Shown: positions 4,363 through 44,500 of the stretch, in pieces | Layout of the letters: each line of letters opens with the position of its first letter | Position numbering within the stretch: the first letter of the stretch is position 1 | NCBI GenBank assembly: GCA_028826165.1 | Contig: JAPDFW010000086.1 | Coordinates: 124,001-188,000, forward strand | Length of the DNA stretch: 64,000 nucleotides | Reading direction: 5' to 3' | Source: Anaeramoeba ignava BMAN | Lineage: Eukaryota; Protista; Anaeramoebae | Program-made: the position numbers and the translations under genes | Notes under the pieces: model-generated | Seen by the model: only the letters and a program-made list of their open reading frames with translations | Databases searched by the model: none | What the model was told of the DNA's origin: nothing

Positions 4363-6187
4363 ATGAATGAAATTTTATTTTTTGGTTGGAATAAATATCC
4401 AAAAATTATCAAAAATCCATCATATAGAGAAATAAAAAAACCAATTCAATTTAAATTTGAAAATGAAAATGAAAATGAAAATGAAAATGAAAATGAAAAT
4501 GAAAATAAAAATGAAAATGAAAATGAAAAACAAATTAAACAAATTTCATCAGGTGATTTTCGGAACAATTTTCCTTTTTGAAAATGGAAAAGCAGTAGAA
4601 TATCGATATTTAAAAGATTCAAAAAAAAATCCTCGAAAAATCCAAATTGAAAATATTCAAAAAGTAACTGTTGGTTGGCAACATGAAGCTATTTTAACAA
4701 TAGAAGGAAATGTATTTTCCAGAGGAGAAGATATTATTTCACAAAATTCAAATGAATTTATCAATATTTCATCATTAATTGAAGATACAAATGATAGAAT
4801 AATTCAAGATATTGTTTCTGGTTATCAATCAATTTATTTATTAACTTCAAATCAAAATCTTTATGGAATTGGTTTAAATCATTATGGTCAACTTGGTTTT
4901 GATTCTAAAACACTTCAAAAAACAGAAAAACCAATTTTAATGATGAAAAATGTTTCTAAAATATTTTCAGGAAGTACTTCAATTCATGTTTTTCTTTTAA
5001 ATTTAAATCAAGAATTATTTTGTTGTGGCTGGAATGAACATGGTCAACTTGGATTAGGAGAATCAAGAAAAGAAGAAACAAAAATCCATAAATTAACCAA
5101 AATCCAAAATATTCCAAAAAGCAAAATAATTGATATTCAATGTGGATATTATCATTCAATAATGTTGATTGAAAATGAAAATGAAAATCCAAAAAGAAAA
5201 CTTTATTCATGTGGAGATTATCAATTTAATGGACTTGGCAAAGATGAAAATACCTATGAATTTACTGAAATCAAATCATCTTTATTTGAAAATGATAATA
5301 TTCTTGATATTTCTGTTGGAAATGCTCATACTTTGATTTTAACTTCAAATTCAAAATTAATAGTATTTGGATATAATTATGATGGTCAATTAGGAACTGG
5401 AGATACAAAACATCAATTAATTCCAATTCAAATTAAACTTCCTAAATTAAGATTTAATGAAGATATTTCTAATTATCATATTTCTTGTGGATATGACAAA
5501 TCATTTCTTTATTATTCTCCTTCTCTTTCTCCTTTTTCTAATCTTGAAGAAGATTTGATAAAATTATTTAGAAGAAAAGAATTTTGTGATATTTCATTTA
5601 AAACCAAAAATGGAGAAATAATTGAAGCTCATAAATTAATATTGAAATATAGATTAAATCAAAATCAAATTGAAAAACTTCAAGAAATTATTTCAAAAAA
5701 ATCAATTAAAGAATCTAATCAAATATTTGAAATGATTTATTCAAACAGAATAATAAATCCAATATTATATTCTGAAATTAAAGAAATTATAAATTTAAAT
5801 GAAAAAATTGAAGAAACAATGAAAAGAATTTATTTAAACGAAAATGAAAATGAAAAAGATTTTATAATTGAAAGAAAAGAAAAGAAATATAAATTTCCAA
5901 AATTAATATTAATAATGAGAAGTGAATTATATCGAGGAATGTTTTTATCTGTAACAAATGATAAATCAAATAAAGTTAGAGATTATAGTGAATTAAGTAA
6001 TAAATCATTTCAAATATTTGAATATTGGATTTATTCAAATCAAATTAAAGATGGAATTGAAATTACAAAAGAAATCATTGATGAAATTGAAATTGGAATT
6101 GATTATTTTCAATTAAATCAAACAAATCCAAATTTAATTGATTTATTAATTAACAAATTTAATAATCAAAATCAAAATCAAAATTAA
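4363..6187 (+). CDS. RCC1-repeat + BTB protein, copy A (one frameshift near 4555)
   Basis: RCC1 motifs (GxNxxGQLG, CGxxHS) and a BTB start FCDISF...AHKLIL. The N-terminus matches paralogues in another frame. Confidence 0.85.
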
Positions 6188-6448: not shown

Positions 6449-8199
6449 ATGTTTATTTTTGGTTCAAATAAAGAACCAAAAATTATCAAAAATCCACCAT
6501 TTATAGAAATAAAAAACCAACTCAATTTAAATTTGAAAATGAAAATGAAAATGAAAATGAAAAACAAATTAAACAAATTTCATCAGGTTTTTTCAACAAT
6601 TTTCCTTTTTGAAAATGGAAAGCAATAGAATATTTAAAAGAAAAAGATTCAAAATCAAAATCCTGAAAAATCCAAAATTGAAAATATTCAAAAAGTAACT
6701 GTTGGTTATGATAATGAAGCTATTTTAACAATAGAAGGAAATGTATTTGCTAAAGGAGAAGATATTAATCCAAAAAATCCAAATGAATTTATCAATATTT
6801 CATCATTAATTGAAGATACAAATGATAGAATAATTCAAGATATTGTTTCTGGAGCTTATTCAATTTACTTATTAACTTCAAATCAAAATCTTTATGGAAT
6901 TGGTTCAAATCATTATGGTCAACTTGGTTTTGATTCTGAAACACTTGAAAAAACAGAAAAACCAATTTTAATGATGAAAAATGTTTCTAAAATATTTTCA
7001 GGAAGTACTTCAATTCATGTTTTTCTTTTAAATTCAAATCAAGAATTATTTGGATGCGGATGGAGTGAACATGGTCAACTTGGATTAGGAGAATCAAGAA
7101 AAGAAATAAAAATACAAAAATTAACCAAAATCCAAAATATTCCAAAAGGCAAAATAATCGATATTCAATGTGGATATTTCATTCAATAATGTTGATTGAA
7201 AATCAAAATCAAAATCCAAAAAGAAAACTTTATTCATGTGGATATTGGATATATAATGGATTTGGCAAAGATGAAAATACTTATGAATTTACTGAAATCG
7301 AATCATCTTTATTTGAAAATGATGATATTCTTGATATTTCTGTTGGAAATAAGCATACTTTGATTTTAACTTCAAATTCAAAATTAATAGTATTTGGATA
7401 TAATTATTCTGGTCAATTAGGAACTGGAGATACAAAACATCAACTAATTCCAATTCAAATTGAACTTCCTAAATTAAGATTTAATGAAGATATTTCTAAT
7501 TATCATATTTCTTGTGGATATCGAAAATCATTTCTTTATTATTCTCCTTCTTTTTCTAATCTTGAAGAAGATTTGATAAAACTATTTAGAAGAAAAGAAT
7601 TTTGTGATATTTCATTTAAAACCAAAAATGGAGAAATAATCAAAGCTCATAAATTAATATTGAAATATAGATTAAATCAAAATGAAAATGAAATTGGAAA
7701 ACTTCAAGAAATTATTTCAACAAAATCAATTAAAGAATCTAATCAAATATTTGAAATGATTTATTCAAACAGAATAATAAATCCAAAATTATATTCTGAA
7801 ATTAAAGAAATTATAAATTCAAATGAAAAAATTGAAGAAACAATGAAAAGAATTTATTTAAATGAAAATGAAAATGAAAAAGATTTTATTATTGAAAGAA
7901 AAGAAAAACAATATAAATTTCCTAAATTAATATTAATAATGAGAAGTGAATTATATCGAGGAATGTTTTTATCTGTAACAAAAGATACTTCTAATAAAGT
8001 TACAGATTATAGTGAATTAAGTAATGAATCATTTCAAATATTTGAATATTGGATTTATTCAAATCAAATTAAAGATGAAATTCAAATTACACAAGAAATT
8101 ATTGATGAAATTGAAACAGGAATTGATTATTTTCAATTAAATCAAACAAATCCAAATTTATTTGATTTATTAATTAACAAATCTAATAATCAAAATTAA
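6449..8199 (+). pseudogene. RCC1-BTB copy B, several frameshifts (pseudogene or assembly errors)
   Basis: Near-identical to copy D, but with multiple homopolymer indels at 6450-6680 and one near 7175. Confidence 0.7.
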
Positions 8200-35892: not shown

Positions 35893-36467
35893 ATGAATGA
35901 AGAATCTGAAAATGATATTGAATTAAGAAATGCAAAATTATCTCTTAATGAATCTACAACATCAATATGTGAAGCAAAACAAGCAAATCTACCTTTATCA
36001 AGAAATACAATAACTGGATTAAATTTTTTAGTTTATAATTATATTGGTAAATAAATTAAAAATAAAAAAATTAAATTAAAATAAATTAAATTTAAAAATC
36101 GGATAAAAATTTTTATTTTCAATTTTTTTTAAAAGAAAAAACTTTGGCTTCTGATTTAGAATCATTTGCTAATCATGCAAAAAGAACTACTATTAATCAA
36201 TCTGATGTTCTTCTTTGTTGTAGAAATAATCAAAAAATGTATTCAAAAATGAAAGAATTTATTGCAAATTTAGAAAAAAAACAAAAAAGAGCAAAAAGAG
36301 AAGAAAAAATTAAAAAAGAATTTAAAATTGATGAAAAACCTAAAAAATCCAAATCTAAATCTAAATCTAAATCAAAATCAAAATCTAAATCTAGGCCAAA
36401 ATCTAGACCAAAATTAAAATCAAAATCAAAATCAAAATCAAAATCAAATCTAAAATCCCAAAAATAA
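35893..36467 (+). CDS. CENPS: Centromere protein S / MHF1 histone-fold protein, 2 exons
   Basis: Exons 35893-36046 and 36136-36467. LASDLESFANHAKRTTINQSDVLLCCR matches the CENP-S signature. KS-repeat tail. Confidence 0.8.
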
Positions 36468-36684
36468 GAAAAAGAAATGAATTTAAATCAAAATCAAAAT
36501 CAAAATCAAAATCAAAATCAAAATCAAATTCAAAATCAAAATCAAAATCAAAATTAAAATCAAAATCAAAATCAAAATCAATTTAAAAATATAAATTAAA
36601 ATCAAAATCAAAATCAAAATCAAAATTTAAAAAATTTTTTTCATTTTTTTGTTTCATTTTTTTTCTTTCTTTCTTCTTTATAAA

Positions 36685-38380
36685 ATGAAAAATAAAAAGA
36701 AAAATAGAAAATCAAAACAAAAATCAATTAAATTTCCTTTTGGATTATCAAATCCTTCAAAAATAATCCCAAAATCAATTCCTTCTTTAAATCTTTATTC
36801 TGAATGGGTTTATGAAAAAAATCAATTATCATTTCTAAAATATCTTTTTGATTCCAAACAATTTATTGAAATTTTTGAAAAATATCCAAATCCAAAACTT
36901 CAAAGAAATTTAAGAAAATTAATCCAAATAGGAACAATTCAAACTTGTTTATCAAGTCGTTATTATTTATCAAATGGAGAAGTTGTACATTTGAATAAAA
37001 AAAAACTTGAAAATGAAACTAAATCAACAATTTTCTACACAAAAGATCATTCATTTTCTTTTAAAAAACCAGATTCTTCTTTAAAAACCAAGTTTTTTGT
37101 TATTGAAGGTGATTGTTTGGAAACTGCTTTTTTATTCAAAAATACAACAGATTTAAAAACTGCTGTCTTAGTTATGGCTTCAAGATCAAATCCAGGTCTG
37201 AAAAAAAAGAAGAAGAAGAAAAAAAAATTTTTTTGTTCCACTTTTTTTAATTCTCTTTTTTTTTTTGCTTTTCAAAAAATTATTATTATTTTATTATTTT
37301 TATTTTTTTATTATTATTATTTTTATTATTATTAGGTGGAGGTTATTTAAAAGGTGCTTCAGGTCAAGGTATTTAAAAAAATATAATTAAAAAATTTCTC
37401 AATAATTTTATTAAAAAAATACTTTTTATTATTTTTATTAGAAGGTAAATTTGTTTTTTGATTGAAAATTTTTTTATTGAAATTTTTTCATTTAAATAAA
37501 AAATAAAAAGAAAATTTACACAGAAGAACAAATCTTTTTCAATGTACAGATGATCCTTATCAAATTAATCCAAGTAAAAAATGGGATTATCCACTTCCAG
37601 AAAAAGGTGAAAAATTAAAAATAAAAAATTAAATAAAAAATTAAATAAAAAATTAATTTAGGAGGTTTATATTGTAATGAAGTAACATGTTTCAGAAAAG
37701 GAGAAGAAGAAGGTTATCAATTTTATGAATCACCTCAAACAATGAATTTTATTTTTGTTTATGGTATTCAATTTTTAAATGATATTTTTATCTAATCAAA
37801 AAAATCAATTAATTTTTTTTTTCAATTTTTCAGCTTATCAAGACCCTCCTTTGAGTTTTCCAGAAAAAGGAGAACCAAGAATTACTGGAGGAATTGTTAA
37901 ACATATAAAAGAGAAAATTGGATATATTATTGATATTGCAAAAGAAAACGGTAAAAAATTGAAAAATATAAAAAAATATTTTGTTCCACTTTTTTTTATC
38001 AATTATTTTTTCAATTATTTATTATTAATTATTTTTCCAATTATTTTTTCACAATTTTGGTTCATAAAGAAATTAAGTGTTTAATTTTATCAGCATGGGG
38101 ATGCGGAATTTATAAAAATCCTCCAAAACATATTGCGGAAATGTTTAAAGAAATACTTTTTTTAGAAAAGAATCAAAATTTTTTTGAAATTGTTTGTTTT
38201 GCCATTTTGGAAAAAAAACCATTTTCTCTTCATAATCCAAATGGAAGTTTACAACCTTTTTCACAAATTTTTGGAATAGAGAAAATTTCCTTTTTAAATC
38301 TAAAAGAAAAATTAACTGAAAAAGAAAAAGAAGAAGAAAAACAAGAAATCAAAATTGAAAATAATTTAAAAGAAAAATGA
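36685..38380 (+). CDS. Microbial-type PARG / TIGR02452-like macrodomain protein, 7 exons including a 3-nt microexon
   Basis: Exons 36685-37195, 37336-37368, 37442-37444, 37511-37606, 37662-37763, 37834-37950, 38070-38380 give MASRSNPGGGYLKGASGQEENLHRRT and LILSAWGCGIYKNPP. Confidence 0.85.
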
Positions 38381-38581: not shown

Positions 38582-41500
38582 ATGTCTTTATTTCATTTAC
38601 TTTTAAACCATGATTACGAAAAACTTAAAAAAAATCTTCTTGGAAAATCTAGAGCAAAGAAAGTTAACAAAACAACAGTAAATTTTTTTTTATTTTTAAT
38701 TAACTAAATAAAAAAAATTTTTTAAAAAAAAAAAAACTAAACTTATTAAATTTTTATTTACTTTTTTTTTTTTTTAATTTCCTTTTTTTTTTTATTAATT
38801 TCAAACAAAGTCTGTAAGTTTTACTTTCTTACTTTTTTTATTTAAAATTAAAATTCATTTATAAAATTAAAATTAAAATTAAAATTAAAATTAAAATTAA
38901 AATTAAAATTAAAATTAAAATTAAAATTAAAATTAAAATTAAAATTAAAATTAAAATTAAAATTAAAATTAAAATTAAAATTCATTTATAAAATTAAAAT
39001 TAAAATTAAAATTAATATTCATTTATAAAATTAAAATTAAAATTCATATTAAAATTAAAATTAATATTAAAATTAAAATTAAAATTAAAATTAAAATTAA
39101 GGTAAGATCTTCAAAATCCTAATTTAGGAGATTTTGCCTAATTTTAAATTAAATAAGAAAAAAATAAGAAAAACACAATAAAAAAATCTAATTCAAAAAA
39201 TCCTAATTTCTCCTAATATTTTTTTTTTGACACCATTTTCCCATTGAGTCCTTAAGAAAAAACTCCTAATTTTTTTCAATAAGAAATTAGGAATTTTTGA
39301 ATATTTTTTTTTCAACAAATTTTTTTTTAACATGAAAAATTTTACAAAAATAATAACAAAATTAGGAATTCCTAATTTTCGGAATTTTCAAGATGATAAT
39401 TTCTTTTATTTTGATTTTTGATAATAAAATGCGATTTTTTCAATTATCACATGTTTGGTGTCTTGAAAATTAAAACTTACCTGACAACTTTTTAGAATTT
39501 TCCTTAAGTCGGAAGATTATATTTCCAAATTTCTTGTGGTTGGGCTTTCTTCATAATATTGTTCAAATCAAGAGGATCTAAATTTTTCTTTTGAGAAATT
39601 CTGGGTTTGGATTAATGATTTTTGAAGAGAATTGCGTTTTTGATAGTGATAATCCAAAAATTCAATTCCTCTTTTTGAATGATTTTTCATCAAAAAAAGA
39701 ATAAAAAATTTTTTTTAGTTTTTATTTTGCTGATTAGAAGTATGAAAGAGTTGATCAAGTTTATGTCAACTTAGTAGTTTTTTTCTGCAAAATAGACAAA
39801 TTTATGAAAAAGATTCAGTAAAAAAAATAGTTTTCTTGTTTAGTTTTGTAGTCTCAGGAATGGGTTTGGGGAATTTATTCCATGAAAAAAAGAATTTAGG
39901 AAAAATTAGGATTTCTTGTTTCAAAATTTTCGATTGTCATTGTCATTTTCAAAATAAATCAATAAAAAATTAGGCAAAAAACCCTAAATTAGGCAAAATC
40001 TCCTAAATTAGGATTTTGAAGATCTTACCAAAATTAAAATTAAAATTAAAATTAAAATTAAAATTCATTTATTAAATTAAAATTAAAATTAAAATTAAAA
40101 TTAAAATTAAAATTTTTTTAATTAAATTAGGATGTAAGTTGTGCAAAAATGAAAAAAAAAAACTCTTTTCTTTTTTATTTTGAATTTTGCAATTATTTAA
40201 AATAAAATATTTTTTTTTTAAATTTTAGGGAAATACACTCCTTCATTTAGCTTGTCAAAAAACAAGTCACAGAGATATAATTCCAGTTCTTCTTGATGCA
40301 GGTGCAAATCCAAATGCTCAAAATGTATTTAAAATTAAAAAAAATTTATTTAAAAAATTATATTTAAAAAATTATATTGATTTTTTAATTAGGATGTTTG
40401 TTTTAAATATATTTTCTATTTTTCTTCTGATTTAATCTCTTTTTTTTTTTATTATTAAAAAAAAATAGGCTGTTAGAAATCTATTCTTTTTTTTTTTTTT
40501 TTTTTTAATTTTTAAAATTAATTTGTTTTGATTTTTAAAAAAAAGAAAATGACACCTTTACATTTTGCTTGTTATTCAAAAATGTCAGTTAGTGTTGTTC
40601 AAAACATTATTTCTCAAGGAGGAAATCTTACTTTAAAAGATGTAAATATTAAAAAAAAAATAAGAAAAATTAAAGTGATCATTTTATTAATAAAATTTTT
40701 TTTTAGAAAGTAAAAAAATTAATTGAAAAGTTTAAATTGAAATTTTTAATTAAAATTTGATTTTTAGGATGTAATTTTTTTGATTTATAAAAAAACAACT
40801 TCATTTCAATAATAATTATTAAGGTTCTTATTTATAACTTAATTCATCTTTCTTTTATCTATTAAAATATATTCAGGGAAACTCACCTTTACATTATGCT
40901 TGCATTAATATGCCAAGAACCCAAACTGTAAATTTTTACATTTCTTTTTTTTTTTAATAAAAAATTTTATTGAAATTGAAATAAAAATCTTTTCAAATTC
41001 AAAAATAAAAGCCTTTAGGAGATATTGGAATGTTTGATTCTCCAAATCGAGATTTAATAAATGCTTTAATTTCAGCAAAAGCTCCTGTTAATGATCAAAA
41101 TGTATTAAATTAAACAAAATTATTTTTATTTGAAAAAATTTTTTATTTAATAAAATAATTTTTTTGATAGAGTGTAATTATTATTTATTTTTTCAATAAA
41201 TTTATTATTTGGATTAATTTTATTAAAATTCTTTTAGGATGTAAAAAAAAATAATTGAAGAATTTTTTAATGAAAATTTTATTTTTTAAATTTTAAATTT
41301 TAAATTAAATTTTAAAGGGAAATACTCCTTTAATTCTCCTCATTTTGAATCATGCTCTTTGTGAAGTTATTCAAGTTTTATTAGATAATAAAGCAGATGC
41401 AAATCTTCAAAATGTTTGACAAAAAAAAAAGATTTAATTAATTAATTAATTAATTAAATTTATTTATTTATTTATAATATATAAAAAAAAAGAATGTAAA

Positions 41501-44500
41501 ATTTAAAATTGAAAAATTTCATTTTCTTTTTGATTTAAAAAATGAATATTATATTTTAAATTTAAATAGAGAGTAAAAAAAAATTATTATTATTATTATT
41601 TTTTTTAAAAGAAAAAAGAAAATATTGAATTAAATTTTTTTTATTTTCAAATGATAGAAATTTTCACCTTTACATTATGCTTGCAAAAAGCCAATTAATA
41701 AATCACTTATAGATGCACTTTTAAAAGCAGGAGCAAATCCCAATTTAAAAGATGTAAATATTCATTTTGGAAAAATCAACAATATTTTTTTTTTGATAAA
41801 TATTTAATAAAACAAAATTTTTAGAAAGTAAAAAATTATTCTTTTTAAATTTAATTTTATTTTTAATTTAAAAATGAATTTATTCATTTTAATTTTTTAA
41901 ATAGTTTGATTCAGCACCATTTCATGATTTTTGTGGAGTAGATAATGATTTTGAAATAATCCAAAAATTTATTGAAGCTGGAGCTAATGTTAATATTCAA
42001 AATGTATTTAAATTTCCTTTTCTTTTTTTTTATTTTTTATTAAATTAATTTTATAAATAAAAATAGAAAGTAAAAATTTTGAAATTTAAGAAAAAATTTT
42101 TTTTAAAATTAATTAAAATTAATGAATTATTTTTGATTTAGAATGTATTTTTTTTTTAATTCAATAAATAAATAAATATTTATTTTTAAAATTATTATAG
42201 AATGAAACACCTCTTCATTTAGTTTGCAAACGTAAACCTTCTGTTGAACTTATAAAACTTTTTTACGTTAATAAATTTAATAATCAGCTAACTGATGTAA
42301 AAAAAAATAATTTAAAAAACAAAATTTGAAAAATATAAATTAATTTAAATTTAAAATAATTTTAGAAAGTAAAAAAATTTTTTTTAATTAAAGAATTGAA
42401 AGAAAAAAAATGAAAAATTATTAAAATTTAAATTTAAATTTATTAGAATGTAAAAATTTTTTTTAATTTATTTTTTAATATATATTTTTTAATATATTTT
42501 TTTAATATATTTTTTAATATATTTTTTAATTTATTTTTTAATTTATTTTTTTAATATATTTTTTTAATATAAATAGTCTGATACACCTTTACATATTGCT
42601 TGTAAATATCGAGCAAGTCCAGAAGCTATTCGAGCTCTTCTTGATCATGGAGCAAATATTAATGCAGAAGATGTAAAAATTTATTAAATTGAAAATTAAT
42701 AAAAATTTAAATTGAAAATTAATAAAAATTTAAATTGAAAATTTATTAAATTGAAAAATTTTTTATTAAATTAAAAAATTAGGTTGTAAGTATTTCAATA
42801 AAAATAAATTTATTTAAAAATATTAAATTGATTTTCAAATGAAAAGAATGTAAAAAAATTTTTTTTGATTTGAAATGAAAAAAAAAATTGAGTTAATAAA
42901 TTTTAATATTTAAAATAATAGCAACATACCGCTCTTCATGTTGCATGTATGTGCCAAGCTTCTAAAGAAGTAGTTGAATTATTATTACAAACTGATGCAA
43001 TTGTTAATGGAGTTGATGTAAAAAAATTATTTAAATTTAAAAAAGAAAATTTAAATTTAAATTTAAATTTTAAATATTTTCTTTTTTTAGTTGGTAAAAA
43101 ATATATTTGAAGATGAATAATTTAAAATTATTTAAAAATTTGTTTTTATTTATAGAATGTAAAATATAAACAAAAAAAATTTTAAATATTTTTATTTAAA
43201 TATTTTATTTATTTATTAATAAATTAATTTTTTAGGAAAATACACCACTTCATTATGCAGCAAGATTTAAAATGGATATTGAACCAATTAAAGTACTTAT
43301 AGATTATGGAGCAGATATTTATTTTAAAAATGTAATTGAAAAAAATGAAAAATTAAACTTAAAATAATATTAAATCAAAAATAAAATAGAAAGTAAAATT
43401 TTATTATTTTTAAATTTAAAATTAAAAAATTAAAATTATTTTTTTTTAGGATGTAAATTTAATTTTAAATTTAATTTTTAAAAAAAAAAATATTCAATCT
43501 ATAAAATAAATCTTTTACAGGGAAAAACACCATATGATTTTGCAAATGAAGACTTGCAAAAAGTATTTAAAGATTATCCAAAACAACGGGAAAATTTATT
43601 ACGAACACAAATCTCAACATTACAAAGAAACGAACAGAAAGTAAAAGAGCAATCAGAAAAGCTTAAAAAATTAGAATTACAACTAGCAAAAAAGGAGCAA
43701 GAATTGCATGAGCAAAACGAGAAGATCAAGAGTTTCAAACAAACAATCCCAACAAAAGCTTTATCAATTACGGAACTCGATTTTGATGGGGATTCACCAT
43801 TGATCCCCAAAAGAGAAAGCCATATGGGAATAACAGACATAGATATGGACGATGTTGAGATTGTAAAGTTTGTGGCAAAAGGAAGTTTCAAAGAAGTGCA
43901 TAAGGGAGTATGGTTAGGACTTGATGTGGCGGTTATGAAACTCTTATCCGGAGCAAATATGACTGAAGCCGAACGCGCTGATTTTGAAAACGAACTCTCG
44001 ATGCTCAGCAATCTTAGACATCCAAATATCGTACAATTTTTAGGCGCTAGTTTGGACCCAAAGAATATGTGCATAATTGTTGAGTTTTGTGATCGTGGAG
44101 ACTTACACAGTTATCTCATGTCAAAAGCTGTCATCAATGACGAAACTAAATTGGAACTTGCTTTAGATATTACAAAAGGAATTTATTTTCTTCATTCAAA
44201 CAAAATTGTTCATCGTGATTTGAAGTCTCCAAATATCTTACTCAACCATAAAGGTGTTGCTAAGATCACCGATTTTGGAATGTCAAAAGCAGTGACAACT
44301 TCAAATCCTAATTTGAATACTTTTGTCGGAACTTTTAATTGGATGGCTCCAGAAATCATGTATGGAGAACCCTATTCCTTTGCGGCAGATATTTATGCCT
44401 TGGGAATTATCCTTTGGGAAATTGATAATAGAAAAATCCCTTTTGATGGTCTCTCTTTTGCTCAGTTAACAATGAAAGTAGCCATTCAAGGTGAAAGACC

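Follow-up and report, generated by a model that had tools for sequence, protein, structure and literature searches.

A 3-nt exon, AAG, in a PARG-family gene of the anaerobic amoeba Anaeramoeba ignava is predicted to complete the catalytic Gln-Glu-Glu (QEE) motif of the encoded protein. We consider it quite probable that the gene specifies an active-type PARG of the bacterial type and that AAG is a free-standing, constitutively included exon giving QEE. From comparison with relatives and from the anatomy of the splice sites we infer that AAG is present in the mRNA, that it is so constitutively, and that the enzyme is active. Homologues, paralogues, the alignment score and the splice-site anatomy all call for one more Glu codon in the predicted protein. 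The site is a clean test case for a one-codon exon, in that the answer is set by an invariant catalytic motif and not by a variable loop. If the reading is true, 3-nt exons in this genome extend beyond repeat-protein arrays and ordinary enzyme genes can hide them, and standard gene models may silently drop residues that are essential and present active enzymes as degenerate ones.

Gene model and family

The stretch of DNA analysed (the window) is 64,000 nt long and has 18.7% G+C. The PARG gene lies at 36685-38380 on the + strand, from an ATG at 36685 to a TGA at 38378-38380, and its spliced model of seven exons, encoding 390 aa, is open through 390 codons. Every intron of the model is of phase 1 and every junction is GT..AG. 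The features to which the text refers are as follows.

36685..37195, + strand: exon 1, 511 nt, from ATG to CCA G with a phase-1 end; N-terminal FGL/QIGT region and first half of the PARG macrodomain, through MASRSNPG
37196..37335, + strand: intron 1, 140 nt, gtctga..attag, phase 1, within the first Gly of GGG
37336..37368, + strand: exon 2, 33 nt; (G)GGYLKGASGQ and the first base of the first Glu codon (Glu1)
37369..37441, + strand: intron 2a, 73 nt, gtattt..tatttttattag, 93% A+T, phase 1 within Glu1
37442..37444, + strand: predicted microexon AAG, 3 nt; bases 2-3 of Glu1 and base 1 of the second Glu codon (Glu2) of QEE
37445..37510, + strand: intron 2b, 66 nt, gtaaat..aaaaataaaaag, phase 1 within Glu2
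37511..37606, + strand: exon 4, 96 nt; encodes (E)NLHRRTNLFQCTDDPYQINPSKKWDYPLPEK(G)
37662..37763, + strand: exon 5, 102 nt
37834..37950, + strand: exon 6, 117 nt
38070..38380, + strand: exon 7; LSAWGCG diphosphate-binding loop, with the TGA stop at 38378-38380

The internal exons (33, 3, 96, 102 and 117 nt) are all multiples of three and, given that all introns are of phase 1, skipping any one of them would leave the reading frame intact. Immediately upstream of the gene start is an (AAAATC)n microsatellite (window 36400-36630). Similar hexamer repeats occur in the flanks of other PARG paralogues of the genome, and in paralogue C111 they fill an intron of about 900 nt within the GGG codons (L005, about 1750-2620).

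A preliminary description of this DNA had called the gene PARG-like, and family searches confirm the call and sharpen it to the microbial-type (bacterial-type) PARGs, PF10021 / TIGR02452 / DUF2263. For these searches the exons were submitted singly, and joined exons were used solely in local alignment and scoring. Exon 1, taken alone, aligns with profile positions 4-88 of PF10021 at 35.3 bits (cut-off 23.5). For the last exon by itself the score against TIGR02452 is 36.6 bits (E 3.5e-9; positions 206-255 of 266), under the whole-protein cut-off of 50 because the exon offers just 50 of the 266 positions. A six-frame scan of the genome gave the same family result and revealed three further PARG-family copies. 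In alignments, exon 2 matches the GGGYxxGAGAQ of homologues, the product of exon 4 aligns without gaps with their NLHRRTNLFQCLEDPY, and the PGGGFLTGAGAQEENLFR of a paralogue falls on the loop that carries the signature in two PARGs of solved structure, from Deinococcus (5zda) and Thermomonospora (3sig). The C-terminal diphosphate-binding loop (SAxGCGxxxNPP) is also present, as LSAWGCGIYKNPPKHIAEMF against LSAFGCGAYGNPP in homologues.

The literature bears out the earlier statement that GGG-X6-8-QEE is the established catalytic signature of PARGs (PMC4030884; PMC4245714), and activity requires both glutamates (PMC4030884). Bacterial-type PARGs occur across most eukaryotic supergroups, and some of the eukaryotic copies have degenerate signatures (PMC4245714). 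With the PARGs of Thermomonospora curvata (3sig) and Deinococcus radiodurans (5zda) the A. ignava gene has in common the macrodomain, the GGG-X6-8-QEE loop and the C-terminal GCG loop. It differs from both in its membership of a eukaryotic subgroup that has roughly 80-100 additional N-terminal residues, the FGI...QIGT region, and in having its catalytic motif spread across three exons. In the same eukaryotic subgroup, protein P0036 (514 aa) has a NADAR domain (PF08719, 94.8 bits) fused C-terminally to its PARG domain, which links the subgroup to ADP-ribose processing.

No protein of the gene was found in the collections searched. Word searches drew a blank both for the first exon, taken within its 234-aa open frame, and for the last, within its 141-aa open frame, and the best identity in the search of representative proteins with exon 1 was 42%, hence no product of this gene itself. 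On that count the gene could be an unexpressed or recently dead copy, which would make the question of splicing moot. We regard this as very unlikely, given that the frame is open through all 390 codons, the junctions are canonical and the conserved blocks are all intact, and absence from collections is weak evidence.

Splice sites of the 3-nt exon

The coordinates and letters given for the exon in the preliminary description are all correct: exon 2 ends CAA G and is followed by gtattt, the exon itself reads ttattag/AAG/gtaaat, and the last junction is aaaaag/AAAAT at 37511. Its two readings also hold. With AAG in, the spliced model gives GGG-YLKGASG-QEE (X7), continuing as GGG-X7-QEE-NLHRRT, GGGYLKGASGQEENLHRRT, in a protein of 390 aa; with AAG out, it gives GGG-X7-QE-N, that is, QEN in frame, in 389 aa and with no stops. 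At the level of the predicted junction, the included form reads CAAGAAGAAAAT and the skipped form CAAGAAAAT.

A canonical AG acceptor and a canonical GT donor abut the AAG, and the flanking introns of 73 and 66 nt are 89-93% A+T. The microexon acceptor at 37440-37441 is the first AG downstream of the donor at 37369, with none earlier. The 142 nt between exons 2 and 4 (37369-37510) contain three AGs and three GTs in total, and AAG is the sole in-frame AG..GT internal exon that this stretch allows. A candidate acceptor inside exon 4, cacag/AAGAAC at 37522/37523, was rejected: it yields QEE but puts the sequence that follows in the wrong frame.

In shuffles of the intron interior, AG+(AAG or AGG)+GT was seen in 0.05% of 200,000 permutations, and among 971 AT-rich stretches of 142 nt on the opposite strand it was seen in 1. 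The chance occurrence of the AG-AAG-GT site is about 0.0005-0.001, so the site is more than coincidence. Across the whole window, the pattern TAG-NNN-GTAA has 17 sites on the + strand and 0 on the - strand; 16 of the 17 are in the adjacent ankyrin gene and the remaining one is the AAG site of the PARG gene. Paired sites in the adjacent gene are spaced 57-78 nt apart, a range that takes in both PARG introns.

On the proposed mechanism, two short phase-1 introns (73 and 66 nt) lying one codon apart would split the catalytic Gln-Glu-Glu. Introns as short as these would probably be recognised singly, by intron definition, and each would be excised through its own GT..AG pair: the donor at 37369 with the first AG, at 37440-37441, and the donor at 37445 (AAG/gtaaat) with the acceptor at 37509-37510. 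Sequential removal is probable, since an exon of three bases leaves scant room for both sets of splicing factors at once. The product would bear a complete catalytic loop, GGG-X7-QEE, and the strong, typical splice signals suggest that AAG is used constitutively.

The triplet AAG recurs at 37508-37510, as the last three bases of intron 2b, a point overlooked in the preliminary description. It follows that an mRNA reading CAAGAAGAAAAT would be compatible either with the microexon path or with one GT..AA intron at 37369-37507, and aligners would map reads of this kind as the GT..AA intron. We take the second AAG to be probably no more than a trivial coincidence, since an A at acceptor position -3 is to be expected where introns are about 90% A+T. 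Introns with GT..AA ends are extremely rare. A QEE mRNA could nonetheless arise from this single non-canonical intron, with the exon starting at the second AAG, which stands directly before 37511; paralogue C111, too, has just one intron here, in Glu1, and continues after it with AG GAA AAT. This reading is exceedingly improbable. Against it stand the rarity of such introns and the GT..AG junctions found everywhere else in the gene, and it would leave the perfectly placed AG-AAG-GT unexplained. GT-AG boundaries are moreover a hallmark of eukaryotic contigs in the genome paper (PMC11550330).

The second glutamate and the intron positions in relatives

A search of 1.84 billion representative sequences with exon 1 returned 51 relatives with which this exon is alignable, and 26 of them extend to the motif. 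A Glu-Glu doublet is present in 25 of these 26 and QEE in 23, mostly as GAGAQEENLHRRTNLFQCLEDPY. The genome's own three paralogues have QEEN as well: in two of them the motif is uninterrupted, and in the third an intron splits it within Glu1. It had been proposed that orthologues with a native QEN would speak against the microexon; QEN was sought among the motif-reaching homologues and the paralogues and was found in none. The single homologue without Glu-Glu, P0047, lacks a longer part of the signature, and the exception looks like a faulty gene model. In public models of P0047, P0008 and P0014, part of the GGG..QEE signature is absent (for example GGGWKN-ESIHRR) or the model runs on into introns, and mis-modelled introns near this motif are probably common in the family.

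Alignment and scoring agree with these counts. With AAG included, the MAFFT alignment is gapless from VLVMASRSNPGGG to NLFQC, through ...NPGGGYLKGASGQEENLHRRTNLFQC..., whereas without AAG a one-residue gap opens inside an otherwise invariant block. Against a profile of 13 homologues, the predicted protein scores 415.8 bits with AAG and 405.9 without it (+9.9 bits).

Two relatives of the family have peculiarities of their own. On contig L009 (positions 930-1010; Logan SRR18067544) the Gln of QEE is written TAA (ggc TAA gaa gag aat), a usage known from ciliate codes, and a shift of one base separates the frame of GGGW from that of GVG-Q-EEN, through either a contig error or a frameshift. Paralogue C83 (L003, G000:C83; reverse strand, 2540-2940) has a long acidic/basic (KKENEI)n-like tail after its macrodomain.

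Each of the two introns that flank AAG has a counterpart in a relative. In paralogue C111 (L005) a single intron, of 72 nt, interrupts the codon for the first Glu, CAA G/gttaat...aaag/AG GAA AAT. In the metagenomic homologue L008 (protein P0011) a single intron interrupts the codon for the second, CAA GAA G/gtaaaa...acag/AA AAT, which matches the predicted second junction exactly; L008 has in common with the A. ignava gene the positions of intron 1, in the same phase, and of the Glu2 intron. L008 is also a member of the subgroup with the long N-terminus, and P0011, its N-terminal product, is closer to the A. ignava gene than to any paralogue. Among the paralogues and the contigs of P0001, P0002, P0003, P0004, P0009, P0011 and P0043, no gene combines the two introns. 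These seven contigs come from other organisms, with 29-36% G+C and in several cases introns of about 30 nt, and only L008 shares intron positions with the PARG gene. In the other relatives the motif lies within one exon, and the closest relatives are about 40% identical. Two introns that occur singly in relatives thus sit one codon apart in this gene and would strand the AAG between them, which suggests a simple origin for the microexon.

These comparisons also bear on a model in which AAG is never used, so that 37369-37510 would be one 142-nt intron and the QEN native, the gene encoding an inactivated PARG-like macrodomain or being in decay. Such a model is the one to be expected from standard aligners and gene predictors: RNA was mapped with Hisat2 in the genome paper (PMC11550330), and very small exons are reportedly missed by short-read aligners (PMC8831610). 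Degenerate signatures, too, are found in some eukaryotic bacterial-type PARGs (PMC4245714), among them P0031 and P0037. However, the degenerate relatives substitute residues, and none, P0031 and P0037 included, deletes one Glu. The Glu2 intron position is shared by L008, the gene is otherwise intact, with good conservation (GGG, NLHRRT and SAWGCG included), and the AG-AAG-GT site, with flanks typical of the organism's microexons, has the low chance expectation given above. We therefore hold a native QEN to be distinctly unlikely.

The preliminary description had also suggested that skipping AAG could act as an in-frame on/off switch for catalysis, and we found nothing in support of this. A regulated cassette would have AAG in or out by condition, giving either an active QEE enzyme or a dead QEN macrodomain that perhaps still binds ADP-ribose. 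A skip would indeed stay in frame and leave the remaining protein intact, and catalysis requires both glutamates (PMC4030884). In animals, 3-nt cassette exons that alter protein function are known, for example in cytohesin-1 (PMC6314551). However, the splice signals here are strong and of the usual kind, no AG stands between the donor and the microexon acceptor, and the QEN form occurs in no relative, hence no hint of a use for one; we consider regulation of this kind unlikely. A more specific proposal is a one-codon switch on a catalytic residue, by which skipping would turn an enzyme that removes ADP-ribose into a catalytically inactive 'reader' that binds it; this appears improbable. Constitutive inclusion of AAG, with QEE as its product, is the reading that we prefer.

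Very small exons in the window and in other organisms

The Anaeramoeba genome is 80.65% A+T and its introns 91.86% A+T, and the paper describing it makes no mention of microexons (PMC11550330). Elsewhere, exons of this size are already known, as constitutive exons of 1-3 nt in plants (PMC8831610) and as 3-nt cassettes in animals, and the PARG AAG would be a further case; its value lies in being a function-anchored test and a warning for annotation. The preliminary description had taken the site as independent evidence that 3-nt exons are real in this organism. That claim gains function-anchored support from homology and site anatomy, although the support is indirect and comparative.

The plant exons are constitutive, are needed by conserved proteins and are routinely missed in annotation (PMC8831610); the ultra-short class spans 1-15 nt and includes the 1-nt exons of APC11 and VPS55 (Yu et al. 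2022, PMC8831610). The PARG AAG resembles them in being too small for aligners and gene predictors, in its canonical flanks, in being needed by a conserved protein, and in having paralogues and orthologues that carry the same bases inside a larger exon. It differs from them in its setting, an anaerobic amoeba with introns of about 92% A+T, in carrying parts of two catalytic codons, and in being known from genomic DNA.

In animals, alternatively spliced 3-nt exons are known from cytohesin-1 (diglycine/triglycine), Drosophila homothorax and MAP4K5 (PMC6314551, PMC7392893, PMC8632122). The likeness to the PARG AAG is that one codon is gained or lost in frame, which may alter function greatly, whereas in the animal genes both forms are demonstrated and regulated and the PARG exon is a feature of a gene model.

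The closest comparison within the window is the adjacent ankyrin gene (38582-43553), which has the same splice look (t-rich tract, tag/NNN/gtaa) and the same intron size range. Its one-codon sites come in long runs; the PARG AAG, in contrast, is solitary and sits at an invariant catalytic position, so that homology dictates exactly what the microexon must contain. Between 38811 and 43450 of the window there are 16 TAG-NNN-GTAA sites and three looser AG-NNN-GTA sites, all on the + strand and many of them paired 57-78 nt apart. Further candidate one-codon exons lie at window positions 4971-4973 and 7002-7004, where an identical ttttcag/GAA/gtactt is preceded by 25 identical upstream bases; both belong to a tandemly duplicated unit, possibly a poly-UBL gene.
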